The notes beneath the pieces are model-generated. The model did no database searches. It had not been told where the DNA came from and saw nothing but the letters and a program-made list of their open reading frames with translations. The position numbers and the translations under genes are program-made. This document shows positions 3,855 through 58,929 of a stretch of 64,000 bases of DNA, piece by piece. How positions within the stretch are numbered: the first letter of the stretch is position 1; every line of letters starts with the position of its first letter. Source of the stretch: Takakia lepidozioides (lineage: Eukaryota; Plantae; Bryophyta); the NCBI GenBank assembly GCA_030704615.1, contig CM060733.1:39556001-39620000 (forward strand). The letters are read 5' to 3'.

Positions 3855-5490
3855 CTAGTCCTCTTCTCGGTCATTCATCTGGCTGCCACTCCCCTTATCA
3901 GTCCGCTTGTTGGCCAGTTTCCCAAAATGCTCCACAAGCTTCCCAAAGTGTCCAATCAATACACGACAATCAACCGCATTTGCAGTCTCTACATTCAATT
4001 CGTTTTCAGCTTTCTGCAACTCAAAACGGAACATGTTATCCTCGTGTTTCTGTTGGTACGCAAACACACCCTCCTGATGTTGTAGAGCCTTCTCAAACCG
4101 AGCAGCTGCACTCTCTGCTCCAAGAATCTTTGCCATGCCCTCGCTTGCACTCTTGAAAGCATTGATCAAGTCCGTGCTTGATGTCGACTTCTTCTTTTTA
4201 CCAGTTGATTTGGGGAAGGGGGCTGGAGAGGTATTGGTGAACCGCTCTCGACTTGCAGGAGTCGGAGGAGGCCCACGAGGAGGAAGTGGAGTTTCCTCTG
4301 GCTCCCGTCGCTCTTGTGGAGTCTCCATACAGCTATCGCCAGATAGCAGCTCCTCCTCAATTAGCACCTCTTCCACGGATGGTACGACTGCCTACAAATG
4401 CCCATGGTGGAACCCACAAGAAATGAAAGAAATGTAGAATCAACAGCAGCATGTAACCAAAACTATGAGAACTTCTTACAAGAGAATCAGATGTGAAGAC
4501 TGGTCACTGAAATCCTTCCCTATCCTCTGTCTAGGGTAACCTACTAGTGGTCTTCCAGCTGTCACATTCCATTTCAGATCTGAGAAGTGCTACACAATTA
4601 GGCTGGCGCCACTCTATGGCTTATAACTTCAGGGCATTGTGCTTAATGGACGAAAATAGCACAATTTGAAATACCTATAAGATTGGACAGAGCGGATGCT
4701 GTATTGATAAGAAAATCTAGGATTTTGCACAAGAGGCCAAAACCCAGTGTATGGATGGAAAATTCAAAGAGAGGACACACAACCCACTTGTTAGTGCCAG
4801 CAAGGACCAGTGGCACAGGAACCTAAGGCCCCAAATAAAGAGCTGACAGATCAAACTGAAGGTCATCACTTCACCCGGCCATGCAGCCAGAGAACAACCA
4901 GGCAGTGCAAAAGGGAGCAAAGAGAGCCAGACAAGGTGAGAAGCTTGACTCGTCAGAAAAGGGGACTTTCCCAGGAGCAGATTTTTGAGAGACACCACAC
5001 CTGAGGGGAGAACTCTTACCATGGAATTTGCTGTCGATTTAGGTTGATTACAAGCACGCTCAGACAAAAAATCCATGTCGTCATAGAGATCCTTCAAAAA
5101 GTACTTTGGAAGCCCGGTAGCTACACGCTCCTCAGAGGAGAGCTTCCAATAATCCTGAGTCCCAGCTGAGTGTAGTTGATGATCTTTTATCTGTCGGTAC
5201 AACTTGAGAAGGAGATTCCATTTGCATAGGCAAGAGGGGCCATCTCGCCCACAAACACCTTTGCTGACCAAGAATTGTACGATCTTTTCCCACGTCTCCT
5301 TGTCAGCAACCATATTCCCTCGTGGATGCTTAGCTTTCCAGATTTCCCACTCCATCCTCTTTGCGACAGCCAGCCAATGCATCTCTTGTTCAGTCCAATT
5401 CCCGAGCCTTGACTTTTTCTTTGGTCGGCTCTGAACTTCGGAAGGCTCCACACCGACTGGACCCGCCTCGTACGACGTTGTAGACGTCAT
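3855..5490 (-). CDS. Harbinger accessory Myb/SANT (trihelix-like) DNA-binding protein, 2 exons (5490-5020, 4391-3855), ~335 aa
   Basis: NWTEQEMHWL...WEKIVQFL...RDGPSCLCKWNLLLKLYRQIKD...YWKLSSEER..GLPKYF. GT donor at 5019 and AG acceptor at 4392 join the two ORFs in phase 0. Convergent with the nuclease gene, as in Harbingers. Confidence 0.85.
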
Positions 5491-8229: not shown

Positions 8230-9735
8230 TCAGGCAGGGAGAGCAGACTGGGAGAGCTCTTTCCTCAGCTTGCGACTGAAGGGCAGGCAAGCATCCACAC
8301 TGAGGTCAACAGCAGCCGCCAGAGCCATGAAAACAGCAGCATCTTCGACACAAGCTACGTGGCGCATGGCCAGCTGCACTAGTGGTTTACTGTACTTGTG
8401 CTCCCCCCGAACTGCACAACTCATAACAAACCCTCCCACTACAGGTAATCCCAAGTTAAATGAGAACTCGCCACTACCTTTGGGACTATCCCTTCTGGGG
8501 CTCTCAACCGGGGAAGTGGGTGGGGACACCTCAGGTCTAACACAGCCTGTATCGATCGAGAACTCACCACCCTTTTGGGCACTCAATAGAGTCTCCGCCA
8601 TCAAAAAGCCAGATCCTACACCTGTTACCCCTCCCCCTCCAGCCATGAGCTGGAAGCGGCAGCCCAAACTCTTCCCGCCGCGCTCTCTCCAAGCCTCCAG
8701 CCGGCCCCAGGGTATCCAGTTGTCCATGCCAGGAGGCTCAGGCCGCAAGATGAGCCAGGCTCCTGGATTAGAGCGACTGACATGGTCAGAGCCTGCTAAA
8801 GGCACGAATGGTGTCACCATAGATGCGGCCGCCACTGGAGAACCGGACAAGTCATGAATCATGACTAGCCAGCCTTTCCTCTCTTTCCTCTCCTTGTCCT
8901 TCTCCCCTGTTGAAGAACTTGACCATCCATTCGTACAACACATATCACTTTGACCCACCCTGCGCGATCATCAAGGAACGCAAGTTCAATAACAATGTGC
9001 TCCATCCTTCCGAATCTCCTCAACTTTTCTGATGGGACAGCCACCTAACTAAACGATGCTTGCACATGAACTAAGAGAAGCACTACAGAGCATTGAAAGA
9101 AAACAAAGCATTCGATGAGCACACATGACCAAGCCGACGACTTACCGTGATCGTGAACTTCTATCTCGACTGAACTTGCAGCTGAAGATAGGCTGCTTTG
9201 TGTTGCCACACACTTGGACAATTTGAGGGCTCAATGCTGTCTCTCCGTCGAATTGAAATTGATATCTGGGATCAGCCTCCACTTTTACACTAAGGTGTAG
9301 CTCTGCTCCCGGCCTCCCTCTCTCTGATTTCCCCTTCCCGACGCAAGTCCAACCGCTATGTAGCAGTATAGGCTTTCCCTCGGCCCATTCCAGGGTAACA
9401 GGCAATCGAAAGGTGCCAAGTTTCTGTCTTCCCGTGAAAACAACCACTTCCAGGCAAGGCGTGGCCCTGCGCATGCAAGAGGGAAGTAACAACTTCTCTA
9501 AGCAAGGCTCATCCAGGTAAAAACTGGCAACGGTGTTGTTCGCGTCAGGGTCACCAGGGGCTGTGGGAGACACTAGCGAAATAGGCACGGTTTGCACAGG
9601 AAAGTGCGGCAGCCGAATCTCACAGAAGCATGGTGATGATGCGGCGTGCACCCCCGCTCGCGATGCTTTGGCTGCAACCGGTATTCTGAGCCCCAAACCT
9701 CCCACGGCCAACCTCACAAATGCACGCGGCTCCAT
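8230..9735 (-). CDS. DUF1005 family plant protein, 2 exons (9735-9146, 8959-8230)
   Basis: MEPRAFVRL...SSPCFCEIRL, DPRYQFQFDGETALSPQIVQV, RKERKGWLVMIHDLSGSPVAAASMVTPFVP, PWGRLEAWRERG, AAAVDLSVDACLPFSRKLRKEL. Canonical GT-AG intron 9145-8960 keeps the frame. Confidence 0.93.
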
Positions 9736-11733
9736 CTCCACATAGCCTACTACCCCTGTAACACTCACCTCCCTCAACTCCTCATCACTTTCCTTTCCCC
9801 TTCCTTCCTTCCTTCCCAACCGTCAGCCAAAAACTGGCCACCCCTCAGCGCAATGTCGGCTTAGACAACAACAACTACCACTTACACTGCGACGCATTCA
9901 AGTCCTCGTACACCTTCCATGTCACCACAGCGCTATGCCACCTTTGGGATGCACTGCGTACAACTCCAGCCGTCAGTGCGTATCCCTTCGCACCACAGCA
10001 AAGCTCGCAGACAGATCTGGCACTAGTGCACAATAAACAAACCTAACAAAGCCTGTCAGCACAAAAAGCCTCACGGCTCACTATCACCCTCCCTTCAGCA
10101 ATGCCAAACGGCTCCCCGGACACTCATCAGACACACACCAGCACTCTAGCTTGGATCTGAGCGATGAGCAAGACAAGCACTCGAGCTTGGATCTGAGCGA
10201 GGCTTCGCGGTGAGCGAGACGAGCAGGCCAGCGCACAGCATGCGAGGCCGCGGCTGGCTTACCTTGCCAGCCTGGCTTCTCATTTACCACCTTTCACCTC
10301 GCCGTCTGGAACGGCTTGCCGTAGTTCGGAATTGTCATCATTGCTGGAATCTACCTTCCGAACGGCTTGCCCTAATTCGGAATTGTCATCATTGCTGTCA
10401 TCTCTGTGCAGGTTTCTCATTCCTCAGTCTCATCTCATCCATGATGAGTTGTTACATCCACAGTTACACGTGGAAAGAGATGGCTCGCGTGACGACGAGC
10501 ACGAGGTTCGTATTATTGGTAAGAAGGGTTTGTGCCCCCAGGATGAATGAATGATAGCTGTCGGAAGGAAGTGGATGGACAGAGTTTGGGGGTCAGTGGT
10601 TGCAGAAGTGCAGACAGCGATGAAGTAGAGCGCCGGCCCTGCCCCACCCATTCATCCACATTTTCTACGCCCCTTCTTACTTCTTCCCCTGCCTTTCATC
10701 CATTCACTGGACGTTAAAGAAACTTTATGCTTTATCCATACTTTTTACGCCCTTCTTACCTTTTTACATCTCATGCGAAGCAGCTTACTGGCACCGGAGC
10801 AAATCTCGGCAGCTATTCCGGCCAGGCTCACTCAGTTAAATGCATATATTTAATTCCGATATCTGAGGTGGATTTGAAAATATATCATTATGGAGCTCAG
10901 GCTATTGATGGAAAAGCAAAATAGAAACGAAAGCATCCCGGCAGCCCAGTCAAAGAGGCAACATGGGTCCTTGATAGGCGGACTTATCGTTTGTTTTTTC
11001 CTATATACTGACATGTATATATTACATAGTTGGTGGAACCGGATGATCTCAGATTTCATTCATCCTGAGATCCCTGCGTTGTCCAAATCTAAGATGCAGG
11101 TGGGGCTCCAGCTCTGCCCTGAATCTGTGCGGCCAGCAGTCCTAAGTGGTGCAAGTTGCATGAACAGCGAGGTGGGTGGGCAGGGTGTGGCCCACTGAAA
11201 CAGAGGGTGCAGGGAAGCTGTGGACAGACTGGACCCAGCCTGACCAGCCAGCCTGCTGCAGTCGCACGGATGGATGTATCTCTGCACGGATGACAGCATG
11301 CGTACATGTGTCATCCTTGATCCATCCATGATGGTGGAATGTGAAGAGAAGGGTGACATGTGATGGTAAGAATGTTGGGATGATGATGATATGTATAATT
11401 GTATTTTTTGTGTATCATGCGTGTGGCAATAATTAGTGGGTAAGGGCAGACGGATGAATTATTTGGAAGGTTGCCCAGAAGTAAGTTATTGTGGGCCGTG
11501 GCAAAAGGGCTCGCCTTTTTGCAGGGAATCTGTTTTGAGTATTTGCCACGTGGCTGGGTGGATGATCGTGGGAGTGGATGGATGAAGGAAAGATCGTCGA
11601 GAAGCCACGTTGCAATATTCCAAGAGCAGGTCTGCCATGATGACTTATGGATGTACAAGATTATGTATGTGCAAGATTGGATGAGAGAGAGTGATGAATG
11701 AGCGGTCCCAATATGGATGTGGCTTGAGCTGGC

Positions 11734-11975
11734 TACGGAAGCCCAAAAAGGCCATACTCGTATACTACCCCGGAACATGGAATATTCTTGAGCCCGGGCT
11801 TAAGATTCCAAAAGCCCGGGACAAGATTCTCTTGCCTGTGGTGTGGTTGAAGAACATGACTCATGTCTTATGTACCCTAAGTAACCCTAGTTGACCAAGG
11901 GTCTAAGTATATACCATGTATTTAACTTGTATATCTTTAAAATACAAATAACTCGTATGTACCTAGTAGTTGTAC
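11734..11975 (+). repeat. Left terminal and subterminal inverted repeat of the IS3EU-like element
   Basis: 24-bp perfect TIR, then imperfect inverted similarity to 28225-28575 (AGCCCGGG / AGAATCT motifs, catgactcatgtc, taaccctagttgacc, gtacctagta). Confidence 0.85.
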
Positions 11976-13010
11976 CTCATAGCAGGAGCACGATGGCTGG
12001 ACCTTGGAATGCCCGAGCTTTCTCCAGGCAGGTTTTGTGGAGAGTCTGAGTAAGATTTTGGTTTTCTCCATCTATTGACAGTGTTGAGTACTCAACACAG
12101 GTGACTCCAAAGACTGTTGCTGATTCGGGAGGTTGGGCATGTATGTCAACTGAAGGCATCATTGAGGTGATTTGCAATTAAAATCCAGTACCTTGCTCTT
12201 GACCAGCTTTTTATCTGGAGATGTTTCTATCCATCATCACTAGCATGCACGCTTTCTCAGTAAGATAAGGTCCTTGCAGACGAGATGGAGATGACATATT
12301 GTGGACCAAGGATCCCATGTTTTCCATCTTACCCTTGAGATTCTGGTAATTCGCCAATTGGTACTCAACATTAGTGTTTAGCCCTGATTCAGTAGTCAGC
12401 AAATCTTGTGACCCCCCCTCGCCGTGTTTATTTGACCAGCTTACTTCAGGTCAGGTAGTGCATGGGTTTTAGTTGGAGAAGGGGTCTCTCCTTTAGAGTA
12501 TGCCTACATGGGCCATCCCCTATGGATTGATGATCTCTGAATGCCTGCACTGGCTTGGATGCTCAACAATTGGGCTAAGGTATGCCCTGTTTTTCATTTC
12601 TTGCCTGCTATAAATACATCCTCCTAATCCCCAGGCCGATTTCTGGTGATCTGTCTAAAGAATGCATTGACAGGTAGGGTCCCACATCAAGATATTTTCT
12701 GGGAAGCTTGACGCTTGACTGGTTGGAGAGGTACCTTAGACACAGGTGATTCAGATGATTCAATGTGGGGGCCAGAGGTAAGACGGTCACCCAAAACTGA
12801 CTACTACGGATGGCAAACCTAGTGGTAAGCCAAGCCCCCATGTGTATGCAAGAGTGTCATGTCAGTCAGATCTGGCTTTGTGTGCAGTGATGTGAACAAA
12901 GGATATGGCATGATTAGGCATTAATGGGTCAGGTTCTTTGCATGCAGGCTTTTGATCGGCTTGTGTAAAATGAGGATGCATTGAAAAGCTGAACCCAGAC
13001 CACAGACAAG

Positions 13011-13339
13011 TACTGCACTGATTGCAGGATGTACTCATCAAGCTTGGAGTGCCCGAGCTTTCCTATAAGCTGATTGCCAGCACGCAGCAACAGTCCGAGC
13101 AGGAAGGATCATATGATACCATCTACTATGCCAGAGCAGGAAGGATCTACATAGTCTCTTTGTCCCCTTGTTTGCCAATAGCAGAGTGTGTGCCCTGGAT
13201 GCATGGCAGGTGATCAACAGCGTCAAAGAGTGGTCTCATGTACTGCACTGATTGTAGGATGTACTCATCAAGCTTGGAGTGCCTGAGCTTTCCTATATGC
13301 TGATTGTCAGCACGCAGCAACAGTGCCCGAGCAGGAAGG
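13011..13339 (+). repeat. ~97-bp direct duplication (13011-13107 / 13241-13339) of an acceptor-led exon-like unit upstream of the transposase
   Basis: tactgcactgattgYaggatgtactcatcaagcttggagtgcc...gagcaggaagg occurs twice. Confidence 0.85.
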
Positions 13340-13359
13340 TTCTCCGTTGTTAGAGTACA

Positions 13360-15541
13360 ATGGAGCCTCAAAGTGACATGGTAGAGTATGTTCAGAGAAT
13401 GCTCAGAGATAGGGTCCCCTTAAAGAACATTGCTGAAGCATTGGGTATCCAAGATCTCAGACAATTGAAGAGATTCATGTCTAAAGCTTTGGGCCATCCC
13501 TTCAGGGTCTACCACCAATTCACAGTGGAAGAATTGTGCCAAAAGATAAGGGAGCTACTTCCGATTGAAGAAAACGGGGTAAATTGGGGTATCAAACATG
13601 TCAAGGTGGCCTTATGTAGGCATAACATCAGGGCTTCTGGACGGAAAGTAGCTGCTGCCGTGACAATCATTTCAGGTTACCATTACGATTGCAGGCGAAG
13701 CGCAAGGCGATTGCAGAGGCTTCAGTACAACGTAACATTGCCAATGGCACTTTGGCATATCGACTATGATTAAATTCTTTGACAAAAATCAAAATCTAAT
13801 AGTTTTCAAGAGTGTTTCCTATCTCTCATGCCCAGCATAGATATGAATATCTTTAGCCCGAAGGACTTGTCCCACTTCGAGTTGTTTCCTTTGGTTAGTC
13901 AATCCTTAGAGGTTGACAGTGCCCAGCCTCAAGCCAGCCCTTTGCATGTTGCCAGCCCCTTGTCGTCTAGGTAGCCTATGGTTGTAGAGAGACAGAGAGA
14001 GGGGGGAAGAGCATTGGAAGTTACAGGGGGGAGACCTGCATAGACCTGCATATAGACGGCACATACACCTTTCTTGTCACTTCCCTTTCAGGATATGGAG
14101 AAGAAATAGCGCACCTGAAACTCAAATGTAGCTATACCTGCAGTGAGGCCTGGAAGTACCCCCCTTACACACTTCTCACCTGCTGCCAAAACTAATGTGG
14201 TGGGTCTCCTGTCCCATTATCAGTTTTTGGCAGGGTGGTGACATCATGCAATGGCAGGTTCCTCCCACCCTGCCCCACTGTCAGAACAATCCTCATTTGA
14301 AGAGCCTTGAGGAGTGCCGTGGCCACCCAAAATCTCTAGGAATGGTTGTGGAAACATATATTGTCGAGGAGATAGACGGATGATGTAGAGTATTGTACAA
14401 TTGTTTTCAGAAAATGCCAAGCACAAAATTTCACAATATATTTGACTTGTTCGTGTTTGTTGCAGCTTATGATAAACTGGTGATGTATGGTCTTCGAGTT
14501 CATGCTGGGATCGATGGTGCTTCCCACTTTGTGCTACGGGCAAAAGTTGCTCGAGATAAGAAAAAACAAACAATCTTTGAAGGATACAATGAAGGTGTCA
14601 TGAAATTTGGACCTCCGTTAAGGATTCGATCTGATTTTGCAGCAGGGCATGTCCTCATCAAGCAACACATTGAGTCTGCACGCCCTGACATGCCCAATGG
14701 TGCCTTTCTGACACGGTCTTCCACCAAAAATCAAAGGATTGAGCATTGGTGGCGACACTTGTGGGAGAAGGTGATGTTCTTCTATAAGAACTGCTTTCAA
14801 GCTATGGAGGACAGAGGTTTGTTGGACAGAGATGATCCATTTCAACTGGAATCTTTTATCGCAATCTATCTTCCCATTGTCCAAGCAGCCGTGGAGGAGT
14901 ATGTGGGCATTTGGAATGCCAACCTTGTTCGTAGGATCAACAAAAATGGGCGTTTTCGTCTAATGCATGTTCCAGCTCGGTATTTCAAGGAGTATGAGCG
15001 TCTCCAAGGGTATAACCATTATCTCATTTGTTTTTTAACTTGTGTTTTGGTTGATCTGGTTCCTCTTCACCACATATACTATCTTCAGAGATGGGTTGAG
15101 CTTTCAACTTCCAGTTTGTAATTTTTGCACCAGCCAGCGAATCTTCAAAAGAGAGAGGGAGAGAGCTGAGAGGTAGGTTACTTTATTTTACATGTGTGAT
15201 GATTGAATTGTGTGTAGGTGGACCAGCCACATTGAGGATTTACATCATTTGGAGATAGCGATCACTTGGGGCCTCGTGGGATGCAACAGTGGATCACGCG
15301 AAATCGAGTTACACCTCCAAAAGTTCCCGAGCTTCCTCCAAATCTTGTTATATTAAGGGATGCAGCATATGAGACTGGAAAGGTCGGAAAAGACTCAGTG
15401 CAGTGCTTTCAGCTTCATTACTACTTATCAGGTTATTGTCATATTGCGACTCAAGCACAGATATATCTGGACAAAATTGATGTCACAGAGGTATGTGCAG
15501 CAAGCCAGGAGGCTCACCAGTTGCTGATTGCTCATAGGTAG
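13360..15541 (+). pseudogene. IS3EU-type DDE transposase (HTH plus integrase core), multi-exon, probably defective
   Basis: Exon A: LKNIAEALG (HTH), RRLQRLQYNVTLPMALWHID. Exon B from AG at 14465: YDKLVMYGLRVHAGIDGASHF, FGPPLRIRSD, SSTKNQRIEHWWRHL, YVGIWNANLVR. Triad is WHID / RSD / RIE. No GT donor follows WHID (gactatgattaa), which suggests a lesion. Confidence 0.85.
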
Positions 15542-17055
15542 ATACTGGCAAGAGTCGCAGCCTTGGAAAAGGCCAAAGAGGTTCATGGTGACTTATCAAA
15601 GCTGGAGCGATAGACCTCGGACCGAGTTTGGACGGAAGAGAGAGAGTTGACAGAGAACTGCAGGGCATCTCACCTTGAAATGAAATCACCATCACTATAT
15701 CAGATACTGAAAGTACGACAGTTGCCCGATTTCTCTCTTTCAAGGACAAAGAGAGATGTGTGGTTTGGTTATTCTTGGGCGCAGGCAGCTGGAGAGATGG
15801 GGAAGGAGTGGGTGGCTACAATAGCAGAAGGGGGTTCGGCAGGAGACTGGCTGAGCAACTCACTCTGCAGTGCAGGACATCAGGCCAATAACCTTGTGCA
15901 GCTCCAACTCACTGGCGCCCTCACTTCCGCCATGTTACTTTGTGTCCTGTGTTCAGTAGCCAGGGCAGTTCCATGTGAACACATTAAGCTGTGCTTGATT
16001 GTGAGCCTGGAGTGGGTGGTAGCTGGAATAGTGAAAGGAGCTTCAGAGAGCTTAGTTGTGAATTTGTCTATTGCAACTTCCATTGAGCTTTGAGGGGCAC
16101 ACTCTGATGCATTCTGGGTTTGTTGTCATTGATTTAGACTTGGCCAGTTTTTGGCTCCTCCATCCCATGCCTACAATGCAACTATCCCAAAGCTCTATAA
16201 TTTGCTGAACAAGTCTGGCTTTGGGTGAAGGGTGATTTGAATTCACTACTCTCCTTTACCTTCAACTTATGGCTTGCTGCAGCAATGGTGGGAGGGGGGA
16301 AGCTCACTACCTATAGTGAACTGCCATAGCTTATGAACTCTGGTTAGGTATGGACATTGTCTGGGTGGTTCTTTTGCCATTATTTCTATAATGCAATTGA
16401 GAGACAGGGGTTAACTATCAGTGGCGAGGGTGTGACAGTGTGGCCATAATTTTGGGAATGCTACTGTTTAGTTTCTGAATACCACAGACATTCTTGCTTG
16501 TTTCAACATAATGCAGCAATGTGAATGGAACTGCCCTTCCCTACATGCTTTTCAATGAAGACAAGGTATTGAATTACAGATCCTTCAAAAACTGTTTACT
16601 CTGCACACCCCAAAGTGAAGAGAAACATGACCTCTTGTCACATCTCCTTTGATGGCGCAGAAGTAATATATCAACGTTGTGCTGGAGTGAAATGTTGAAT
16701 TGAGAAGCTATCCTGGATGACACATTATTATAAGAGTATTTAATTAACTGCCAATTGCAGTTTCAATCTAACTCTGCCTGTGGGTCCTACCCAAATCCAT
16801 AGTCTAAAATCCAGTCTTACCAGCAGCTTTGTTAAGCTGCACCTGGTAAGCAGGTTAAGTACAAGTGCCCTTGATGGTGAGAGAGCACCACTAGACCTGC
16901 ACTCTAAAAGTGAAGGTGTCTTGTCCAACTGAGCTTTCAGGGGAAGGCACAATTCAAGTGAGCTTGATGCCTGGGAAAACGGGCCTTAAAGGTGCCTTTT
17001 GACATCTTTTCTATTCAATCCATACATGCTACAGTGTTGTCCTTATGCACACTTA

Positions 17056-19294
17056 TAGGGAATTCCAAAAAGGCCTTGATGTGAAATGCATCGCAATTCA
17101 CTTGATCACCCCCTAAAAGTGCGCAATTCAATTGAACTAACCCTAATTTGCAATTCAATTGAATTGTCGGCACACGATTCAATTGAATTGGGAATTGGCA
17201 ATTCAATTGAATCGCTAGTTGGCAATTCAATTGAATTGCTGACTACAATTCAATTGAATTGTAATCTATAATTTTTAACTTATTTCTGTATATAATATAT
17301 ATGTATATATTTAAATTATACATATATACATACACAAGTATAAGCTAAAAATACATGTTGCCCGTCTATTCTTGCTGTCCGTCTGTCAATGCTTTGCCCG
17401 TGGTAAGGCTTGAGCCCAAGATAAGCCTAAGGGAGAGCGAGAGAGGGAGAGAGATAGAGGGGAAGTCACGAAGCGCTTGTAAAAGCGGGATTGTCTCTCT
17501 TTGTGGATGTTGGTGCCAATATATGGCTAAGTACATATACCAAACATGATACCAATGTAAGAGTATCAACGTGTAAGAGTTTGATATATTAAACTTATAT
17601 AGAACACACATCCCAACTTCAACATGATACCTTTGTAAGGGTATCCAAATTTTTGATAATTCTCAAGATGAACATATTTTTTGTTTTCTTTGTCCTGGGC
17701 CAGATACTAGTGTTAGGGGACTACATGGTGATGCAGGGGAAGCCTTTCATCAATTGTCAGGTTTGATTTTGTCTGTTTTTTTCGGAGCCAGCCATGTTTC
17801 TTTTGCCAGTGAATCACAGGAAGCTGCTGATCTGTCTCCGTCTCTCCCTTTCTCGCTGAGGCTGAGGGTGGTTTCACAACTCCACAATTTCCTCAAGGGC
17901 ACAAGAAAGAGGGCCAGCAAGAATAGACGGGCAACATGTATTTTTAGCTTATACTCTTATATATGTATAAATATAATTTGAATATATACATGTACATATA
18001 TATTATATTATATATACAAAAAATAAGTTAAAAATTATAGATTACAATTCAATTGAATCGTGTGCCGACAATTCAATTGAATTGCGCACTTTTAGGGGGT
18101 TGTAGGGAATTCCAAAAAGGCCTTGATGTGAAATGCATCGCAATTCACTTGATCACCCCCTAAAAGTGCGCAATTCAATTGAATTGCAAGGGCAATTCAA
18201 TTGAAACTAACCCTAATTTGCAATTCAATTGAATTGTCCGCACACGATTCAATTGAATTGCGAATTGGCAATTCAATTGAATTGCTGACTACAATTCAAT
18301 TGAATTGTAATCTATAATTTTTAATTTATTTTTATATATAATATATAATATATATGTACATGTATATATTCAAATTATATTTATACATATATAAGAGTAT
18401 AAGCTAAAAATACATGTTGCCCGTCTATTCTTGCTGGCCCTCTTTCTTGTGCCCTTGAGGAAATTGTGGAGTTGTGAAACCACCCTCAGCCTCAGCGAGA
18501 AAGGGAGAGACGGAGACAGATCAGCAGCTTCCTGTGATTCACTGGCAAAAGAAACATGGCTGGCTCCGAAAAAAACAGACAAAATCAAACCTGACAATTG
18601 ATGAAAGGCTTCCCCTGCATCACCATGTAGTCCCCTAACACTAGTATCTGGCCCAGGACAAAGAAAACAAAAAATATGTTCATCTTGAGAATTATCAAAA
18701 ATTTGGATACCCTTACAAAGGTATCATGTTGAAGTTGGGATGTGTGTTCTATATAAGTTTAATATATCAAACTCTTACACGTTGATACTCTTACATTGGT
18801 ATCATGTTTGGTATATGTACTTAGCCATATATTGGCACCAACATCCACAAAGAGAGACAATCCCGCTTTTACAAGCGCTTCGTGACTTCCCCTCTATCTC
18901 TCTCCCTCTCTCGCTCTCCCTTAGGCTTATCTTGGGCTCAAGCCTTACCACGGGCAAAGGATTGACAGACGGGCAACAAGGATAGACAGGCAACATGTAT
19001 TTTTAGCTTATACCTATGAATGTATATATGTATAATTTAAATATATACATATATATTATATACAGAAATAAGTTAAAAATTATAGATTACAATTCAATTG
19101 AATTGCGAGTTGACAATTCAATTGAATTGCCAATTCGCAATTCAATTGAATCGTGTGCTGACAATTCAATTGAATTGCAAATTAGGGTTAGTTCAATTGA
19201 ATTGCCCTTGCAATTCAATTGAATTGCGCACTTTTAGGGGGTGATCAAGTGAATTGCGATGCATTTCACATCAAGGCCTTTTTGGAATTCCCTA
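17056..19294. mobile_element. Nested non-autonomous IS3EU-related element, inverted dimer (fold-back), 6-bp TSD CACTTA
   Basis: Ends TAGGGAATTCCAAAAAGGCC and its reverse complement; CACTTA at 17050-17055 and 19295-19300; a third TIR copy starts at 18103; mirror-image ORF pairs whose coordinates sum to 36351; many palindromic CAATTCAATTGAATTG subterminal repeats. Confidence 0.92.
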
Positions 19295-19778
19295 CACTTA
19301 ACTCTTGTTCAGTTAGGACCTACAAAAGTTCCACCCTTCAGCATATACAACGCTCCAGACAGATAAGAGGCACTATCTAACTGTCAACTGCAGCTGGACC
19401 ATTGACACTTGTACACACAACAATTGGGTGGTGGAAGCAGACAAAAGTACTATCAATCTTCATCCAAAATTTCTTAACCTCTTTTGCAAGACTACTAATA
19501 ATAATTATCTTTTATCTCAAAACTCATTTATCAATTTCAGCTTTGAATATTCCATTCATCCATACCAATTTTAATGTAAAAGATTCAAGAAAGCTCATTG
19601 TTCATCTATCAATTTCAACTTATGTAGCTTTGAATATTAAATTGATCCATACCAATTTGAACGTAAAAGATTCAAGAAAGCCTTCTTCCTCTTGCATACT
19701 GATTGTGTGGCCCTTCAGGAGCAGCAAGTCCATCAGCACATTTGTCAGCAGTGGATAGCAGGTCTGTAAGATACTAAG

Positions 19779-22700
19779 ATGGCAACAGAAGACATTGATG
19801 GCTGCAATCAAGAGGAGTCTACTCCACCTTTGCGGGTAGCTGTCTTTCCCAGGGAAATTCAGGCTAGAGGGCAGCAATTTGCCTTCCCCCCACGTTTTGG
19901 ATCACCTACAACACCTTCTACTTCTAGGCCACGTACTCCCCGCCCTAAACAAATTGGCAGGAGGATTTACTTTTGGCCCAGGTCTGCCCAATGGACTCAA
20001 ATCAAAGGCATACTGGTACCTCTTTTGGTTGAATGGCCAAAGGACCTCCCCTCAGTGCTAGTATCTCTTCCTGCATCAACTATTTGGGGAGGGTTCACTT
20101 ACCCAGAGCCATTTTCAGTGGACAGTGTAGAGTTCCAGGTTGCAAAGTCGTTTTCAACTCCTCCAACTGCCTCGGGCCTTTTTTTCAAGAGGTCAAAGAG
20201 ACCACAAGGATCAGCCCCTCATAGGGGCTACATCCTCCAGCCCTACCGGTGTGAGGAGGGAACCTGTTGGGGCAAATTGCCATCCCAGGCCTTTGTCATC
20301 TATTGCCCAGACCCCACTACTATGCCAAGGGAGGGGGTTGCCGCCTATACAGAGTTTCTACGACGCCCCATTGACCCTCCTGGATCTGAAATAGTTGTAG
20401 CTGGGTCCAATCACCTGCAAGCATCTCGTCTTCGACTTCAACGGCCACCTCCATTTCATGGACCTGCAACAACAGACAACTCCGATGATGATTTTGAAGA
20501 ACTGATGCAGGGACGCCCCCGACCTCGGCTCATGGTGACAGGTTCCTCTTCTGATGCAAGTGCATCCCAGCATCCTTCGATTGCTCAAAGAACTGGGCAG
20601 GGTACCTCTAATTCCATCCACTTTCCCTCTGAATCTAGGTTTCTCTTGCATCCAAGTCTAGAGGGAGCTTCACCTGTACATGATTTCGGAGCCACATCTT
20701 CACAGGGAGACAATGACGTTGTCCACTTGGGAGATGCACCCATACATATCGACATCCACCTCTTCAACTTGCAAGAGAGGTGGGTCGAGTGTCAGGATGC
20801 TTACTTTCAAGCCATAAATGAAAAACAAGCCCTGGACAAACATCACGACTCTGACCCTCGTGATGAAGTCAGATCTAAAGCATTTTGGGCCGCCTTCACA
20901 GACTTTGAAAACTTTATGAAAGTATGTCAAGACCTTACTAGGAGGCAGTACCTGACAAGAGGTGTGGTGAGCACTGAGGCTCATCTCACCAAAGTGGTTA
21001 TGCACCCCACTATGAGTATGTACACACCTACTGATATTCGGCGGGAGTTTGAATTGAGGGCCAGGCCTTTCTGGACTAATTGGGATGACTTTGAGGCAGC
21101 AATGAAGCGTATCACCGATGATGTCATACGTGCCAAAGCGAGTTCACTTGTTAACACTTATGGGGGAGGTTCTGTTAGAACAGGCCAGGATCATGCCTTG
21201 GCGCTGTTGGATGTTGACACAATCCTCCAAGATCCTGCCTTCACTAAGTTCACAACTAGGTCTTATGTGTAGGCCAACCACAGAAAACAGGAGGGAGGAG
21301 GAATCTTCTTTACTTGATGCCCGAGAGAAGGTAGATGACGCGTTGCTGGCATATCAACGCTACTATCTTTCTCACACTGTTTTTGAAGGCTACAACCATA
21401 TGCTCAGGACCTCTACACAGATTCAGGACACACATATCCAGGTACATGTGTACTACTATGTGGCATATGCCTACTATGCCACCACTCTGGTTTAAGCCAA
21501 TCCTTGACTTCCTTGCTCAGACTGGTTCATTCATGATGATCAATGCCTACCGCTACTTTGCATATAGGGATAACCAGAAGGTCATTCCCATTGATTCTGC
21601 AATCCTAATGAGCCTAGGGCACATTATTCTGACTACTTTTAATGCCTGTTTTATGCTCTATACGTAGGTACACCAAGGGCGGGAGTTTCTAATATTTGCC
21701 ACACACTGGGGGGACGGTTTGCGCACCAACAAACTCTGCTATAGACCAAAAATCAACTATGTTCACGGGAGTGGAATAGAAGAGATGGGGACAATTGACG
21801 AGAATGGTTTGAGAGATAGTTGGTTGACGAACATTTGGAAACAGTTCTGGTCCCTCCCTTATGTAAGAATACGCTCCCTGCCCACTAGGAAGCCTAGGAA
21901 GCCCCTTCTAGTTTGAAGTGCCCATTGTGCCACAACTAACAGAGGGAAACCCAAAGAGACAAGAAGACAACACAAAAAATAGATAGCGAGAGCAAGATAC
22001 CTTTCATGAAGGAAAGAGATGAGCCAGCATTGGAGGTTGCAAAGGACAACAGTGAGGAGCCAGCCAGTAGGAGGCTGCCACCACTGCCACCACTGCCCCC
22101 TGATGATGGTGGCGTGGTGTTGCCAGTGGCTGAGGTGCCCATACCCATAGCATCACCATGTGCATCTTTAGTTGTGGGCTTCAGACCAAACACGTGAACT
22201 GTGCCTTTGTCACTGGAGAGCCCCAGCCATTGAGCATTTGCTGAGAAAGCGATACTGTAAATGTTTTGGTCAGCTCCTCGCCGAAGCTGCTCACAAAACC
22301 ATAGGGCTCTTTAGTATCTCTACAATAACATACTTCTATATCCCTTCTATGACTGTCAATCCATTGGCATCACAGCCAATCATGGTTGGTTTGCTGTCTT
22401 TCCTGAATGCAACATGGAAAGAAAGATTACAACAATTTTGGTTGGTTACAAGGAGTTCACTCATCTAAGGATCACTTTGTTTTGCTGGCGATGTACTGTT
22501 TAAGTTCCCAATGTGCACTTCACTCTTAAAAGGAAGCGCTCACTTTTTTTTATATCAGAACCAGCAGTTGGGGTGAGACTGACAGATTTCGATATAGAGA
22601 ATTGCATCTACAGAGTGAGAGAAAATGTGGCTGGTGAGGAGGGAGAGGCAAAAAGACAGACTTGTGGATTTCACTACATTTCTTTAATCTCCAAGGTGTG

Positions 22701-23991
22701 CATGTGGACAGTTGCTTGTGTGCATCAAAAATTCAACCTTACTGATATCTTTCATCAGGGACCTCTTTCATCTAGAGGTAGCTTCCAAGAAGGCTAGGCT
22801 GGGGTGTGTTACTAAGTGTTTGGTGTGGGGGTCCCTTGCAGAATCATCAAGGGATATTTGAATATCCTGATAACAACCACGGAAAAATCTTGCATCCCAA
22901 GAATGATGAAGATATCTTGAGGCATGAGCAAGTAGACACGGTAAGTGCCATAATCAGCTACATCTTTAAGTTTTTCAAATCAGCCATGGTAAATTCAACT
23001 TATTTACGTTAATTGTAACTGATGTGCACATTGTGTCATCCACAGGCACAGATGCTAGGACACCTCCTCTTCATGATTGCCTCATGTGGACTGGAGGTGT
23101 CTAGATACTTTTCATTTGCAACACTGCTGATGATATGTGATCAAGTCCCTTCTTCAATGGACTAGTCAAAGGGGGTGTGTCCCAAGCTCCGCGGAGACTT
23201 GGAGCGGGATTTCAGATTGGGACTTCAAAATGGTCATTTCTTCAGCAGCTGCGCAAATCTAAGAACTATGAAGCTGCGCAAGAGATTGTCCACCAACTGG
23301 CTGCAAATGAATTGAACGAGGACCTTGGGTGGAGTTTTGAAAGTTTCAAACTGGATGAAGAAACTTGGCCTTCACAGGTATTGTCTTATATGCAATGAAA
23401 ACAAATGCATAAAAACAATATTTGTGCTTCAATTGCTTTTGATTGATATTTTTTGTCTTGATTGGTGGCTTCTAACAGGTGGAGGATAAGCTAGGAGCGA
23501 TTGTGTACAGTCACCTTTTCAGTGGAAGGGAGACGGTAGGGAAAGCCCTACGCGAGGGCTTTTACATGTCAGTTGCAACAGCTCCAACGTCCCAAGCAGT
23601 AAAGGAGAAATTGAAGGATTGTCTTCGAGACCGTCTGAGCCCCGAGAACCTCAGGGTGGTCTTCAATGGCGCTTGTGCCATTGAGGCACAAGACTTCCTA
23701 AGGAAATGCAACTTTTGCTCGTCTGTGGATAAAACACAGCAAGACTTTTTCAAAAGTTGCATTGAGAAGATGACCTACACCGAGCGATCGCGCCTCTCTG
23801 TCTTCATCACGGGCCTCGAGTACTTTGGAGGCAAGGAGATTACCATCGACCTGTTAAACAGGATGGACGAGCCATGTGTTCAGGCGTCCACTTGTCTTTC
23901 ACAGCTGTATCTCCCTCCTTACAAGGATGCGGACACAATGCTGAGAAAGATGAAGTACTCAACTATGGACACTAGCTATGGGAGACCTTAG
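19779..23991 (+). pseudogene. Transposon-borne HECT-domain E3 ubiquitin ligase gene, multi-exon, with frameshifts
   Basis: Last exon: ERSRLSVFITG...VQASTCLSQLYLPPYKDADTMLRKMKYS..SYGRP (HECT C-lobe with catalytic Cys). N-lobe-like EEMGTIDENGLRDSWL at ~21780 and IFEYP...AQMLGHLLFMIA at 22855-23080. GT-AG introns 22941-23045 and 23378-23478. A 497-aa N-terminal ORF precedes the domain; frame breaks near 21270 and 23165. Confidence 0.8.
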
Positions 23992-24177
23992 ATTTGCGTG
24001 CTGCCAGCACAAAATGGGGAAGGGCTTACCATAGCCAGCTTGTGAGTCGTGTGACTGGCCTTGGCCTCCTTTGACTGCGCATAGAAGGCTGTATACACTG
24101 CCGTAGCCTAGGTTGATTCCCCCACTGTCACCTGTAGCCCTCTACCTTGCAGCACATTGAGAAAACAATTGCTGACC

Positions 24178-24690
24178 TGTAAGCGCTGTTGTGTGTTTCC
24201 ATCCACATAAAACCTGCCACCCCAAATCAAGGGCGTACATAGCATAAGATCATTTGGTAAGCATGGTGGTGTCTGAATCATTGTTTGGGTTACTTGCTTT
24301 CCCCACTGCCAGAAGTCTTTCAGGTGAAGCAGCCATTTGTTAAGGGTCAGGGAGGCCTCATGACATGGATGGAGCTGTCAGAGGCCGTATTCATTGGAGT
24401 CCCACATGTACAGCTCGCCACGCCCTTAGATCACCACACAGAAGAGCAAACTGATCCATAGTAAAAGATATCATAAATAGGAAAGAGAAGAAAAAAACCT
24501 ATAGTACATTCCAATGCATGTGCAAAACTTCCCAGGCCTTTCTCAGCACTAGCCCCATGATGAGGACACCAAGAATGTGACTTACAGGTGATAGCGCCCG
24601 TGTGGTAGCCACCGCAAGAAACCTCCACAACAGCAGGAAGGGCAGGCACTTGGACTGCCTCCCTCTTTCTCTGTGTCTGAGACAAAGTTC
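24178..24690 (-). pseudogene. Captured RCC1-repeat gene fragment (2 exons plus intron)
   Basis: VQVPALPAVVEVSCGGYHTGAIT|gtaagt, then GELYMWDSNEYGL* and QVLCGWKHTTALT. Confidence 0.75.
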
Positions 24691-24856
24691 AAACGTCTCT
24701 CTTCCCCTCAACCCTAGGAAGTAGGTTCCAAGGATCATCTTATGACAGCCCTACAGATAGGTCTAAACAGATAAAACTTCAGCAAACAAAAGGAAGCCAT
24801 ATCCATAAGACTGAGAACAAACATCCAATTGACATGGTCAGAAACCAGTGACCTGC

Positions 24857-27667
24857 CTCATTGCACATTTCACTGGATTTTATGTACTCCCCAAGCTTCT
24901 GCTAACACGCAGCCACATTGAGAAGCAATGAACTCTGCCAAAAATTACTGCCTTGTTAGCGCCAGACAATCCACACTTGCATAATGGTGATCTCTTGCAT
25001 GAATTGCTAAATGCAACTGGCCAAAGATCTCCCACTTTTCTTGAACACACATGCATTACCAAGGGACATACATCTTTATTAGTTCAACCAAATAACAAGG
25101 GAACAACAATCCTAGAAACCAGCAACAATCACCTGGCTCTTTACAAGCTCCTCACCTTCCTCATCATTTTGTGGATTTACATGCTTGAAATCCGTAAGCC
25201 CCAGTTACGGCCATTAGAAGGTGTCCACCTTCAGACTACACTTGAAAGACCAGGTGTGGAAAATTGTTGTGTAGAAGTTTTACACACGTAAAGCAGGTCA
25301 CTAAACTGGTCACTGATTACCTTATCATATTTGGCCTTGGCCACCTCAAACTTGGCTTCCTTGAATAGCCGGTTTCCCTGCACGCACATTTGCAGAGCAT
25401 CACATACAGCATAAAGTCGATCTCATTCAGGCACAGAACATCTCCAGCAATTAGTATGTTGGTTTCCTTGCACCATCACTGAAGACAGCCTAAATCAGAT
25501 CTATACGCTCCTACTTCATACAAGAAAGTAGTAAAGTGAGTATAAAGGCATACCGTGGATTTGATTGTATCCACTTCAGCCATTATTTCTTTGAAATTGA
25601 GGCCTGTCCAATCCTGCCACCACAAAGAGTTAGCTTAAAATTCCGCTCATTGATGTTTATCATTGATAACATGAAGCAATCTTTCTATCTTTCTAAGGGA
25701 CCAGAAACTACCTTTGTAAGGGGCTCACTCCGGTAGTATGACTTACCTTGATACAAACAATTAGTTCGGGTTTTCCAGATATCGTCTAGGAAGCCCTTCA
25801 AACAAGCATCAATCTGCTGTGTGTGAGCAGCCCAAGAGTTAGACTCCGACAGGGCCAGGGCTTTAGGCTCAACCTCAAGATTTTGGAAGTTGGCAAACAG
25901 AGGTGCCAAGACATTGTCCTGAAGAGGGTCACTCTCTGGTGAGAATATCCCGGACACTATCAGAAAATGGATATTGTCTTCAGGTTGCCCACACATCAGG
26001 TGATTACAATCTCCTCTTCCTCTCTGCATCTGTTTATTGTTCAAGGGTAGGGTCCTGCCCTCAGTTAAAATTTCAGTCCAGTGCCAAGGGTAGGTATGCC
26101 CTTGAGATCATCCTTAAGGTCTGCCCATGTCACAGACTGGAAACAAGTTCAGGGAAGTTTTATGCCTAACTTCATTTTCATCGGACAGCCTTTGGGCATC
26201 AGACATGGCTTTGGACACACCCCCCTCCAGGTCAGCTTCATCCAGTAGGGTCAATTCATCAGGACTGATATTCAGATACTTGAAAATCTCATCCACCTTT
26301 TCCCGCCAAGACTTGGCCTGTTTAACAGGACTGTCTAGCTTCCGATAAATAGATTCGATTACCTTAGGGTATCTGGTATTAGGCATGCGATTCAACCGAC
26401 CCCACCATCTGACCTTGAATTCATCACGTCGAGAGCTTAAGAGAGGTACGCCAGATGCACCCCGAACAGCCACATTAGCTGTTCTAGAACAAGCCGACAT
26501 GCTTTCTTTGAGCACTGCGGCCTGAATGGATTCTAGGGATTTAGCATAGTTGGAGTTGTCAACCCACACAGCAGATGCATGCTCCAAGGCCGGCCTTATA
26601 ACATTACAAGGATCAGCACAGGGTGAGTGTTGAGAGGCCCAGTCTCAAGCCTGTCGAAGATTAGCGAATGTACTCATCAGACGTTGCTTGCCTACGCCTT
26701 GTGGCCATAGACTCCACGCCCAGTTTGCGCGAAACAAAAGGGAACAGGCACTACCTTTGTGAGGGGGTCACTAGAGAGAGAGAGGAAAAGAGGAGTGAAG
26801 AACTGCACCAATGGTGTACAATTTTCCTGGAAGTATAGCCCGGCTTGAAAACTATCCAGAGTTGGCTAAAAAAACCTATGAAAGTACCTTCAAAGAAAAT
26901 ATTTCGCCTTCACGATCACAGTCCAGCCATAGCACCGCATCCACGTGCTTCTTGTTGCAGATGCTTACACACATGAGCCTGCCTTCATGCCAGTGTTCCA
27001 TATGTTAAGAGGAAGCAAGTATTCACTCATTATTTCCCAAATATCATTTACATTAGGAAGCCAACTCTGCTACTGGCATCCAATTCATTAACTCCATCTC
27101 ATCTAGCCTTTCCTTAGTGATGATAGAACTGATGACACGTGGCTTGAAGCAAATGGTGTCACTGGATTGAATGGTTGTATCTTTTCCAACCAACTACAAA
27201 TATTATGTAAACAGCAGATTCAAACAATAAAGGGTAACTTTAGTGCAAAACTTATCTACCTATCTATCTGGAAATTCCTTATTTGACAAGTGACTTCATG
27301 GCCTGCAGTGACTCTTCTATTTTGAAACAAGAAAAGCTGATGGTACAATAAAAATGATACAAATCCAGTGGCAGGAATTCAAATCTTTCTATCTTTCAGG
27401 AAGCAATTAACTGGATAAGGCCAACTGGCAGAAGAATTGAGTGTGGGAGAAAGGGTTGATAAGCCAAAAAACCACCAAAAATTGCATAGATTATTCAAGC
27501 ATGGACAGACTGTGGTCTGAGCTGTGAAAGGAAACGCTGGCCCACAGACTCATGTAGATGAGTATAAACAGTAAATGCACTAATGTAAATGGATGACCTT
27601 GCGTGTTTCAAATCCTAACAATTCCACCTCCCATTGCACTGAAGCCCCTTCTGGAAAAACTTCTGGC
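24857..27667 (-). pseudogene. PAS1: Captured genomic fragment of a PASTICCINO1/FKBP72-like immunophilin (5 consecutive exons)
   Basis: Exons 27667-27598 PEVFPEGASVQWEVELLGFETRK; 25613-25554 DWTGLNFKEIMAEVDTIKST; 25377-25321 GNRLFKEAKFEVAKAKYDK; ~25200-25133 DFKHVNPQNDEEGEE; ~24934-24857 LLLNVAAC*QKLGEYIKSSEMCN. This follows the FKBP-to-TPR junction of plant PAS1 as I recall it. One in-frame stop. Confidence 0.85.
25685..26600 (-). mobile_element. 5'-truncated non-LTR retrotransposon 3' fragment (RTEX/L2-like post-RT region plus Cys/His knuckle) in the PAS1 intron
   Basis: LEHASAVW...LESIQ...TANVAVRG..G...LSSRR...VRWWGRLNRM..RYPK, then LRAG.LPLN..MCGQPEDNIHFL. Confidence 0.7.
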
Positions 27668-28224
27668 CTGCACCCAATCAATTTGTTTCCAGTTGCAATC
27701 ATGGAGCAAAAGATAGCATGAGAGATCCCACTCACTAAAGTTTTAAAAATTGACCTTCATCTTTGTAAAGGACGTCAACCGCAATTAGACATCACGAGCT
27801 GGATTGGACACCAGCGTTGAGTTGGGAATTTGTCTGCAATGATTTGAAAGTGAGCCACATAGAAGTCTTCCCAGAAGAATACCTGGGAAACTTTTCATAG
27901 GCGTACTTGGAGACACTGTTAATAAGAGCAAGCTCCCCTGGAAGCATCAGTCGGAGACTCGTTTCAAGTCCTCAGGTACCTGCAAAAGCATACAGACAAC
28001 GGCTCATCCACAGAAGAAGTACATCAATCAATTCAATGTCCACAATGGTCACAACACTTATAGCAAAGACAGAAACTGTAGGGTTGCAATCCTGTAACAC
28101 TTGCTCCGCACCTTTCCTGGAACCAAAGTCACGGGAGAGACAAAAACGATTACCTTTAGAAAAGCCCAAAACTAACGCCTTGTCTGTTAGGGCAGCGAAC
28201 TCCAACTCAACATACACGTACTTG

Positions 28225-28575
28225 AGGTGTACTAGGTACAGGAGAAATATGCAGTGTATATGTTTAGATATACAAGAAGTATACGCTGACCCAAGGTCAA
28301 CTAGGGTTAGTTACGGGACATGAGACATGACTCATGTTTTTCATCCAAGTCCCCGGGATGGGAATCTTATCCAGAATCTTAAGCCCGGGCACTAGAATCT
28401 GTCCCGGGCTTTTGGAACATTAAGCCCGGGATAGAGAATAGTTTAAGAATATTCAAATCTTTTGGCCCGGGGCTAGAGAATATCCTAGAGAATTTTAGAA
28501 TCTTATGCCCGGGCTAGAGAATCTTGTCCCGGGCTTTTGGAAAATTTACTAGTATGGCCTTTTTGGGCTTCCGTA
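28225..28575 (-). repeat. Right terminal and subterminal inverted repeat of the IS3EU-like element, with more CCCGGG/AGAAT motif copies than the left end
   Basis: agtatggcctttttgggcttccgta end; about seven cccggg motifs in 28351-28533. Confidence 0.85.
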
Positions 28576-28585
28576 GCTGGCCACA

Positions 28586-30487
28586 GGCCTCGGCACTAAG
28601 TCCCAAGCCATTTCAGGATAGTGCCGTGGCCCGGGCTCCCGTGCTCATGCCCAGGCTGGCTTGTTCCTGGCTCCCTGCCACCCTCCTGATCGCTGCCCTG
28701 CCTTCTAGCTAGCTCCCTGCCACGTCGTGATGTAGCTAGATTAGATCTAGATGTCAAACGAGATACCATAATCACAACTTTGGGCTTAACCCTTAAGTTC
28801 CCAAGCGACTCACTTTGAATTTGCAGTTGGACCTAATTTTTGCAGATCTAATCTGATGGGGCCACTCCTGAAGCTTTAATGACAAGGGATTTGTCTCGAG
28901 TATGATGCAAAAAACAAAATTGAAAAAAAAACAAAAGCTACGACCTACAAAGAATATCTTAGATCTCTCATTTCCGTTTTGGGCCTGAAAAGGGCTGTTG
29001 ACCGCTGACGTGGCAGGTAAACAAGCCCAAAACAGATTGCACTCCAAAGGCCATTTTTGGCAGAAAATTAGCAATTTTGGAAAAAGCACTTCACCTTGTG
29101 GTGTGTGAGCATTACATACACACATCCACCATTGGCTTTTAAAAAATTTGTAGAAAAAAAAGTACTTCATTTGGAGGCACATTTTCTCTTGTCAATTTTG
29201 AGATGTAATTGCATGCATAGCAACCATAAGTGAAAAAATCAGTTGGACCTGCAATTTAGTGGGGTCATAGCCAACTCCACTATTGATTTGGAAATGGTGG
29301 GTCTTGGGGCAAGCAAAATTGGATAAAGCTAGGTTTTGATTTGGTCAAACCTATTTCTTTCTCACTTTTTCGTTGGGACCTAATATTTGAGGTCCGGGCC
29401 AACGCTATAATCTCACAATTTCCACGGTGGACTTGGCTCATTTTTTGGTATGTCATGCATAAATGAGCTGGGCCCATTGCTATAAGGCTGGAATCTGGGG
29501 ATGATTTTTGGTAGGTTTCTAGGGGCAATTTACTCCAGCTGGGTACCCAAAATTGGTAAAAAGTCAAAAAAGGGCTTGGGAACTTAAGGGTTAAGCGGTT
29601 CTGCCATCCGAGCTGCCATCTAGACTGGGTTGTGGGGTGAAGAAGTCTGCTTGCAAGCAGGGTGCAGGCAGTGGAACCACTCATAGTTGCAACCCATCAA
29701 AGTTCAAGCTGTACATGGCCTTGGGAGTCAGCCCTCGGGATCAAGCTTGTCAAATAAGGTAATCTACGAGCCCGCTGCAGGTATCAATGAGATGAAAACA
29801 CTCGTCAACAGAAGACGTAGAAGGACGGGACGGTTGGACCTCGGTTGGTATGATCGTGTCAATCTAATTCCTGGAGAGTGCATGTCGAATTCGGGGGCCA
29901 TCACCCTTTCTCGTCCAAGTCCAGACTCCAGACATCTTGAACATGAGGTCAATGGACTAACAGAGACGTCCAGATTCATAGTGCACAGTTTCTGAAGTGG
30001 GAGCTGTTGATAGCTTCACATCCATCCTGCACGTCTGACTTATCACACTCTCTAACTCGGAAAAGTAGTAAAACTCTCTAAAGTTGGTCTTCCTCCAGAT
30101 CTTGGTGACATATCTGTTCCCGACTAACCGGTCGAAGAAATAACTTCGTGCTCTTGAAAATGAGTCCTTCAGAATAAAATGCTTATAGACCCACCGGGTA
30201 ACGGGTTCTTCTTCAAGCGAGTGCGTTGGCTTCCATCACTGCCTCCTTATGGGAAACTGGGACCTGACAAGAGTAACCTCTTGCAGTAATAACTTGCTCC
30301 AATATGATCGGCCTGGTGTTGGGCGTCGACATCAAGCGGAGCCCGCGGGCCAGCAAGAGCGCATGGGCACGTCGCAGGGGGAGCTAACCTGGCAGCGGGG
30401 CCAGCCAGCAACCCAGCCCGGGCATGAGGACGGGAGCCCGGCCCGCGGTACTATCCTGAAAATGGCTTGGGACTTAGTGCCGAGGCC
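28586..30487. repeat. ~95-bp GC-rich inverted repeat pair (28586-28680 / 30390-30487)
   Basis: ggcctcggcactaagtcccaagccatttcaggatagt is exactly complemented by actatcctgaaatggcttgggacttagtgccgaggcc; imperfect similarity continues for ~60 bp. Confidence 0.8.
28790..29590. mobile_element. piggyBac-like non-autonomous element (801 bp)
   Basis: TTAA|CCCTTAAGTTCCCAAGC ... GCTTGGGAACTTAAGGG|TTAA: 17-bp perfect TIR, CCC..GGG ends, TTAA on both sides. Confidence 0.82.
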
Positions 30488-58520: not shown

Positions 58521-58929
58521 ATGTTATTTCTTTAAAAGAAGCGTAAACAGGCTGGCTGGACGATGATCCAAGGTTCCCATACTTGTACTCTGGCCTTCTG
58601 GCAACGTCATAGGATTGGGCCTCATGTTAGGATAGTATCCTTTCTCTTTGCTGTAGTGCAAGCGAGTGCTTTTCTTTGAGTTGACATGGGTGTCTCGCCT
58701 TCCACCATTGTTGCATTGACCATGCCTCTGCAGACTATTTGATGTTGTGACAATCATATGTACCTGTGATCCAGCCACCAAAGCACTCTTATCTGTCCTC
58801 TCATGTTTACCCATACCAGCAACAACAGAATCATGCACCACCCCACCCTCTGGGTGATGCCCATCCCTTCCTTTGAAAGTTGCACCTCTGATTGAGCCCG
58901 CTGGCTCCTTGCGCATGGATCTGATCCAC

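Follow-up and report, generated by a model that had tools for sequence, protein, structure and literature searches.

A decayed GingerRoot/IS3EU-type transposon of the bryophyte Takakia lepidozioides with a HECT gene as its probable standing second gene

When a transposon holds a gene for a HECT-type ubiquitin ligase beside its transposase, is that gene a lasting part of the transposon or a passenger picked up from the host? We addressed this question with a 16,842-bp element (positions 11734-28575) in a 64,000-nucleotide stretch of the Takakia lepidozioides genome (assembly GCA_030704615.1, contig CM060733.1, positions 39,556,001 to 39,620,000 of the forward strand), referred to below as the window. 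We consider it likely that the element is a once-autonomous, now decayed cut-and-paste transposon of the GingerRoot/IS3EU lineage, in which the HECT gene served as a standing second gene.

The element is bounded by exact 25-bp terminal inverted repeats (TIRs) at 11734-11758 (plus strand, beginning TACGG) and 28551-28575 (minus strand, ending CCGTA), and it is flanked on both sides by the perfect 6-bp target site duplication (TSD) GCTGGC (11728-11733 and 28576-28581). Thus, the TA..TA termini and the 6-bp TSD that characterize IS3EU and GingerRoot are both present. The initial annotation had described a complete 16.8-kb element with exact 24-bp TIRs starting TACGG; the boundaries, the TSD and the start, position and exactness of the TIRs all hold, the repeat measures 25 bp, and completeness applies to the boundaries, not to the coding content, both genes being broken. 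No exact inverted 20-mer arose in 20 base shuffles of the window. Only one copy of the element was found in the window. The left TIR nearly matches the ends of four related loci (L001, L016, L021, and L002). Inward of the exact repeats, the next ~130 bp are still 74 to 76% similar, with indels between them (11784-11921, complementary to 28270-28398; GingerRoot TIRs have been described as 100 to 150 bp), and patchy similarity between the two ends reaches ~190 to 250 bp inward. CCCGGG-cored motifs are confined to the ends (two on the left, seven on the right, and none inside) and are possible transposase-binding sites. An Rfam search of 11 to 31 kb of the window gave no match.

Within these ends lie two genes on the same strand, a transposase gene and a HECT gene, which matches the description of IS3EU as a two-protein family. 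The transposase is encoded on the plus strand by three exons: exon 1 (13360-13765) contains a weak helix-turn-helix and ends at WHID, the site of the first catalytic D; exon 2 (14466-15009) holds the rva_4 core with RSD and NQRIE, the second D and the E; and exon 3 (15218-15541) encodes a C-terminal region that matches relatives at 42 to 51% and has an apparent frameshift near 15260. All the motifs reported earlier (WHID-YDKL-HAGIDG-RSD-NQRIE) were found on this strand. Besides the weak N-terminal helix-turn-helix, the only domain detected was rva_4 (Pfam, E=1.6e-27); the D, D, and E positions are all present, and HHCC, GPY, and reverse transcriptase are lacking, as in an IS3/integrase-type DDE transposase. 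Some otherwise conserved positions in exon 2 are altered (alignment columns E63 and G86), and intron 1, which separates the first catalytic residue from the second, has an AT donor where five related loci have GT. A 105-bp direct duplication (92%; 13007-13110 and 13237-13342) immediately precedes the transposase start. The transposase profile had no match in viral contigs.

The TIRs, the 6-bp TSD, and the rva_4 transposase agree in placing the element with IS3EU, as initially assigned. The further proposal that it represents an undescribed plant lineage of a superfamily not known from land plants did not survive a comparison with the literature. GingerRoot, published by Cerbin et al. in 2019 from lycophytes and bryophytes, with 77 intact copies in Selaginella lepidophylla, has TA..TA ends and a 6-bp GC-rich TSD (PMC6839031), and Kojima and Bao joined it with IS3EU at 99% bootstrap (PMC10045372). 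The catalytic core of our transposase is identical to the printed core of the GingerRoot element Sl-GR-005 at 52 of 115 positions without gaps (counted by eye), and a protein of the moss Ceratodon is its closest named match. In a quick tree, from which hits shorter than 110 amino acids and most hits after P0110 were excluded and in which the Repbase and GingerRoot sequences themselves are absent, the window transposase grouped with moss-type sequences and then with Coccomyxa, at Shimodaira-Hasegawa-like approximate likelihood ratio test (SH-aLRT) values of 90 to 94, under the tool's mark of 95. Because GingerRoot is published and joined with IS3EU, and because of the core match and the tree grouping, we assign the element to this catalogued plant lineage. 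A clustering with long terminal repeat (LTR) integrases, which would have spoken for another origin, was not observed; Gypsy integrases fell far outside, on very long branches of the quick tree. An origin from an LTR retrotransposon was rejected on this ground and on the lack of long direct terminal repeats.

The element shares with GingerRoot its occurrence in non-seed land plants, the TA..TA ends, the 6-bp GC-rich TSD, an apparently long TIR region, an integrase-like DDE core, and the capture of intron-bearing host exons. It differs in size, since published GingerRoot elements measure 3.9 to 12.9 kb, and in its HECT gene, since the published account mentions no HECT, ubiquitin, or second core gene (PMC6839031). 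With IS3EU it shares the TA..TA ends (TAYGG..CCRTA in fungi), the 6-bp TSD, the DDE transposase, and the coding of two proteins (PMC10045372, PMC8232023, PMC12730594). However, in the accessible papers the second protein is named only for rust fungi, whose IS3EU carries alpha-kinase and TET/JBP genes (PMC12730594), whereas here it is a HECT protein. We found no report of HECT as the second protein of IS3EU or GingerRoot in the literature covered, which did not include the Repbase entries and Kojima 2019. The HECT identity of the second gene thus seems unreported, and Repbase may already annotate it.

The HECT gene consists of five plus-strand exons with canonical, phase-matched splice sites, in agreement with the multi-exon gene noted initially on the transposase strand; searches and folds were run exon by exon on unjoined exons. 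Exon 1 (19779-21441) encodes a conserved N-terminal domain of ~150 amino acids, a basic stretch resembling a nuclear localization signal, a low-complexity linker, and a helical region, with a frameshift at ~21220-21256. Exon 2 (21668-21862) begins the HECT N-lobe by motif resemblance and has no Pfam match alone, exon 3 (22842-22940) has homologues in related elements, and exon 4 (23046-23377) contains an in-frame stop (23163-23165) and a frameshift near 23220. Exon 5 (23479-23991) encodes the C-lobe, which matches Pfam PF00632 at E=9e-12 (45.7 bits, against a cut-off of 23.9) and has both the catalytic Cys (23893-23895) and the aromatic residue at -4 (Tyr) of a HECT C-lobe. The Cys lines up with the catalytic Cys of UBR5 and with WWP2 and is kept in 14 of the 15 sequences that span its column; together with the -4 aromatic, it is retained across plants, Coccomyxa, and apparently medaka. 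For the N-lobe, Foldseek ranked HECT structures at the top with E values of 0.1 or worse. The predicted structure of the HECT gene product has a predicted local distance difference test (pLDDT) score of 66. The conserved N-terminal domain (pLDDT 71) gave no Pfam, PDB-sequence, or significant fold match, only nonsignificant beta-grasp-like matches at E values of ~0.5.

All five HECT exons have homologues that adjoin the transposase in the same order at related loci. This second gene or a HECT-like gene stands alongside at five of the seven distinct loci fetched via the transposase (L001, L002, L016, L018, and L023/24; L001 holds only the N-terminal part), and conversely a transposase is present at four of the five informative loci fetched via HECT (L003, L004/5, L010-13, and L021). 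L016 (9.8 kb) is complete: its ends begin TATGG, its TSD is GTGCTC, and both genes lie inside; at L021, paired ends without a matching TSD enclose both genes. The co-occurrence of the two genes is therefore not confined to the Takakia copy. Between diverged moss-type elements, the ratio of nonsynonymous to synonymous substitution rates (dN/dS) was 0.08 to 0.17 for the HECT exon (0.43 in one very close pair) and 0.05 to 0.09 for the transposase. Taken together, these comparisons point to the HECT gene as a standing second gene of the lineage, in which purifying selection has preserved it together with its catalytic Cys.

The Takakia copy itself has decayed. As it stands, it is predicted to make neither protein, because of the AT splice donor and probable frameshift in the transposase gene and the frameshifts (~21240 and 23220) and stop (23163) in the HECT gene. 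Besides the two genes, it contains a nested 2.2-kb TIR element and ~4 kb of captured host exons with a probable fragment of a long interspersed nuclear element (LINE), all of which the initial annotation had overlooked and which account for its length of 16.8 kb. The nested noncoding element (17056-19294; 2,239 bp) lies between the two genes and has TA..TA ends, an exact 81-bp TIR like the outer one, and the 6-bp TSD CACTTA; it is rich in palindromic repeats at 24-bp spacing and comprises two mutually inverted units of ~1 kb, with a further left end inside it at 18103. It is probably a nonautonomous relative of the outer element. The cargo occupies ~4 kb of the 3' end (24.4 to 28.2 kb) on the minus strand. 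It includes part of an RCC1 repeat (24584-24655; Pfam E=5.6e-4, narrowly missing the curated cut-off) and a five-exon FKBP-TPR gene fragment (25130-27980), four of whose exons have clean AG/GT borders. The latter, presumably PAS1/FKBP72-like, had weak matches to wheat FKBP73 (E=0.8) and to TPR proteins (E values of 0.02 to 1.2), and one of its introns holds the probable LINE 3' fragment (25688-26644), recognized by motif resemblance with no Pfam match. This cargo fits ordinary GingerRoot capture. That a host gene had instead been split by two unrelated TIRs was ruled out by the matching TSD, and no further FKBP exons were seen past the right end.

The pairing of transposase and HECT is probably not plant specific. 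In Coccomyxa, the gene immediately upstream of the transposase is a HECT gene (Pfam E=1.6e-11), although the plant and Coccomyxa HECT sequences match weakly (hhalign E=0.002, probability 14%). In medaka, an 11.3-kb IS3EU-type element (L023, 8429-19694) with long inverted TATGG ends and no matching TSD carries a transposase and, convergent to it, a second gene whose last exon bears a Cys and resembles a C-lobe. A HECT N-lobe consensus was found in this gene and in none of 200 shuffles, and the HECT motifs are preceded by a small zinc finger of the C2HC type that looks like a ubiquitin-binding one. Single exons of the medaka gene had no significant Pfam or PDB match, and a comparison of the plant and medaka HECT sequences gave none, so that its identification as a HECT gene is at motif level. 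No paired TIR and TSD was found at the Coccomyxa, Daphnia, and amphioxus loci. A weak RING-finger gene stands beside the rva_4 transposase in Daphnia (L017, 12166-13266), and an AAA-ATPase gene stands beside and convergent to that in amphioxus (L025, 4852 and 16557-21539). These may be alternative IS3EU second genes, the two loci being without established element boundaries. With the alpha-kinase and TET/JBP genes of rust fungi also considered, the second slot of the superfamily seems to hold various enzymes, of which HECT is one.

Several observations weigh against a standing HECT gene. Most of the moss-type loci trace back to a small number of samples and do not count as independent, and several relatives are broken too, such as L016, which has stops. 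The HECT sequence is very divergent (Pfam scores of 38 to 55 bits, for the C-lobe only), its Foldseek matches are not significant, and the Daphnia and amphioxus transposase loci show no HECT. In Ceratodon (L002), the two genes are head to head and incongruent, the transposase being 83 to 86% identical to that of L016 and the HECT gene 39 to 57%. The two genes come from different sub-lineages, so that modules have been shuffled. At the same locus, a GingerRoot-type left end is followed by a DnaJ fragment and then by the HECT gene and transposase (2019-3280), and no right end was found within the locus. An alternative explanation would be that the HECT gene is a fragment of a host ligase gene of the UPL family, picked up once by this copy in the way that it acquired its FKBP and RCC1 cargo; 29% of the Selaginella GingerRoot copies hold host gene fragments, introns included (PMC6839031), and the present copy contains such cargo itself. 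However, the cargo is absent at every related locus, whereas the five HECT exons recur in other elements with their order unchanged and under purifying selection. Moreover, none of the 25 relatives of the HECT gene found in a word-seeded, length-limited search is named as a host UPL. Host HECT ligases comprise UPL1-8 and subfamilies I to VI, of which subfamily IV is short and absent from angiosperms (Marin 2013, PMC3712016). The transposon HECT shares with them the C-terminal HECT domain with its catalytic Cys, but it is far more divergent, multicopy, and located within transposon ends (subfamily IV was not directly compared), and the ARM, IQ, UBA, and ubiquitin domains that mark UPL subfamilies are all missing from its N-terminal region. 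Given the linkage, the purifying selection, the retained Cys, and the absence of UPL naming and UPL domains, a one-off capture, which the initial annotation had left open, is very unlikely and largely refuted. It is another matter whether the HECT genes of the land-plant, algal, and fish lineages descend from one ancestor. Independent acquisition has nearly an even chance in our estimation: the plant-Coccomyxa match is weak and the plant-medaka match is missing, gene orientation varies, and other enzymes fill this slot in fungal lineages (PMC12730594), while the grouping of the land-plant and Coccomyxa transposases (SH-aLRT 94 in the quick tree) fits shared green-plant descent.

Returning to the HECT gene as a standing component, we propose the following mechanism. 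By established DDE chemistry, the transposase would bind the TIRs, excise the element, and insert it with a 6-bp staggered cut. In intact copies, the HECT product would act as an active nuclear E3 ligase, passing ubiquitin from a host E2 onto a protein to the benefit of the element, and the conserved N-terminal domain may select that substrate. The Takakia copy would later have acquired the 3' host exons and the nested nonautonomous relative and lost its coding capacity, and its intact ends suggest that it could still be moved in trans.

As a matter of judgement and not of result, we rank a host repressor of the element as the target of the ligase ahead of its own transposase or post-integration complex, which we hold about as probable as all other roles together. 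Such counter-silencing is a tentative reading, somewhat short of an even chance. The TET/JBP and alpha-kinase genes of fungal IS3EU (PMC12730594) offer a precedent. Like VANC of VANDAL and TET/JBP of fungal transposons, HECT would be a nontransposase second gene kept by the element and proposed to counter silencing; by analogy only, since those proteins act on DNA methylation, whereas HECT would act via protein ubiquitylation. Alternatively, the ligase might ubiquitylate its own transposase, limiting its level or stripping a stable post-insertion complex from DNA. The ligase is always encoded beside the transposase and a self-directed benefit would stay with the element, and the AAA-ATPase gene convergent to the amphioxus transposase would fit remodelling, if it is part of that element. 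A tight enzyme-substrate pair should nevertheless resist the exchange seen in Ceratodon, and we regard self-regulation as somewhat unlikely. In Harbinger elements, the second protein is an accessory transposition protein. A HECT fold kept in such a role, or as a noncatalytic scaffold, would agree with the extreme divergence from canonical HECT, the N-lobe undetected by Pfam, and the pLDDT of 66, but the retention of the catalytic Cys and the -4 aromatic in plants, Coccomyxa, and apparently medaka makes this quite improbable. The broadest proposal, that an active HECT ligase is an old, widespread, and undescribed core gene of IS3EU/GingerRoot in green plants and fish that removes a host silencing protein, is in our judgement unlikely as a whole.

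The window contains several other features. A TIR-bounded element of ~1.9 kb (~28584-30480) begins a few bases from the right TSD; its inverted arms (28611-28663 and 30409-30461) extend outward, and no clear TSD was found. A PIF/Harbinger-type element comprises a DDE_Tnp_4 transposase and a convergent Myb/SANT gene (11-1105, plus strand, and 3855-5490, minus strand), and a DUF1005 host gene (8230-9822, minus strand) lies ~2 kb to the left of the GingerRoot element. An intact-looking pentatricopeptide repeat (PPR) gene of the PLS type with E and DYW domains was found at 33716-36301 (minus strand), with PPR fragments at ~46100-47000, 58500-59200, and ~61000-61230. Fragments of LTR retrotransposons, among them a Gypsy-type integrase, occupy 39506-40105 (minus strand) and 47900-50200, and open reading frames at 61091-62530 (minus strand), in which a D-rich core comes after a cysteine-rich stretch, resemble another transposase type with no confident Pfam match.

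The element family, its ends, and its gene capture were already known, and the Takakia copy is dead. IS3EU and GingerRoot have been described as poorly characterised, and a conserved HECT ligase as their second protein makes its role directly testable. Divergent "HECT genes" annotated in single lineages of mosses, algae, and fish may belong to transposons. If the ligase does target host silencing proteins, this would be a new route of counter-defence via the ubiquitin-proteasome system.

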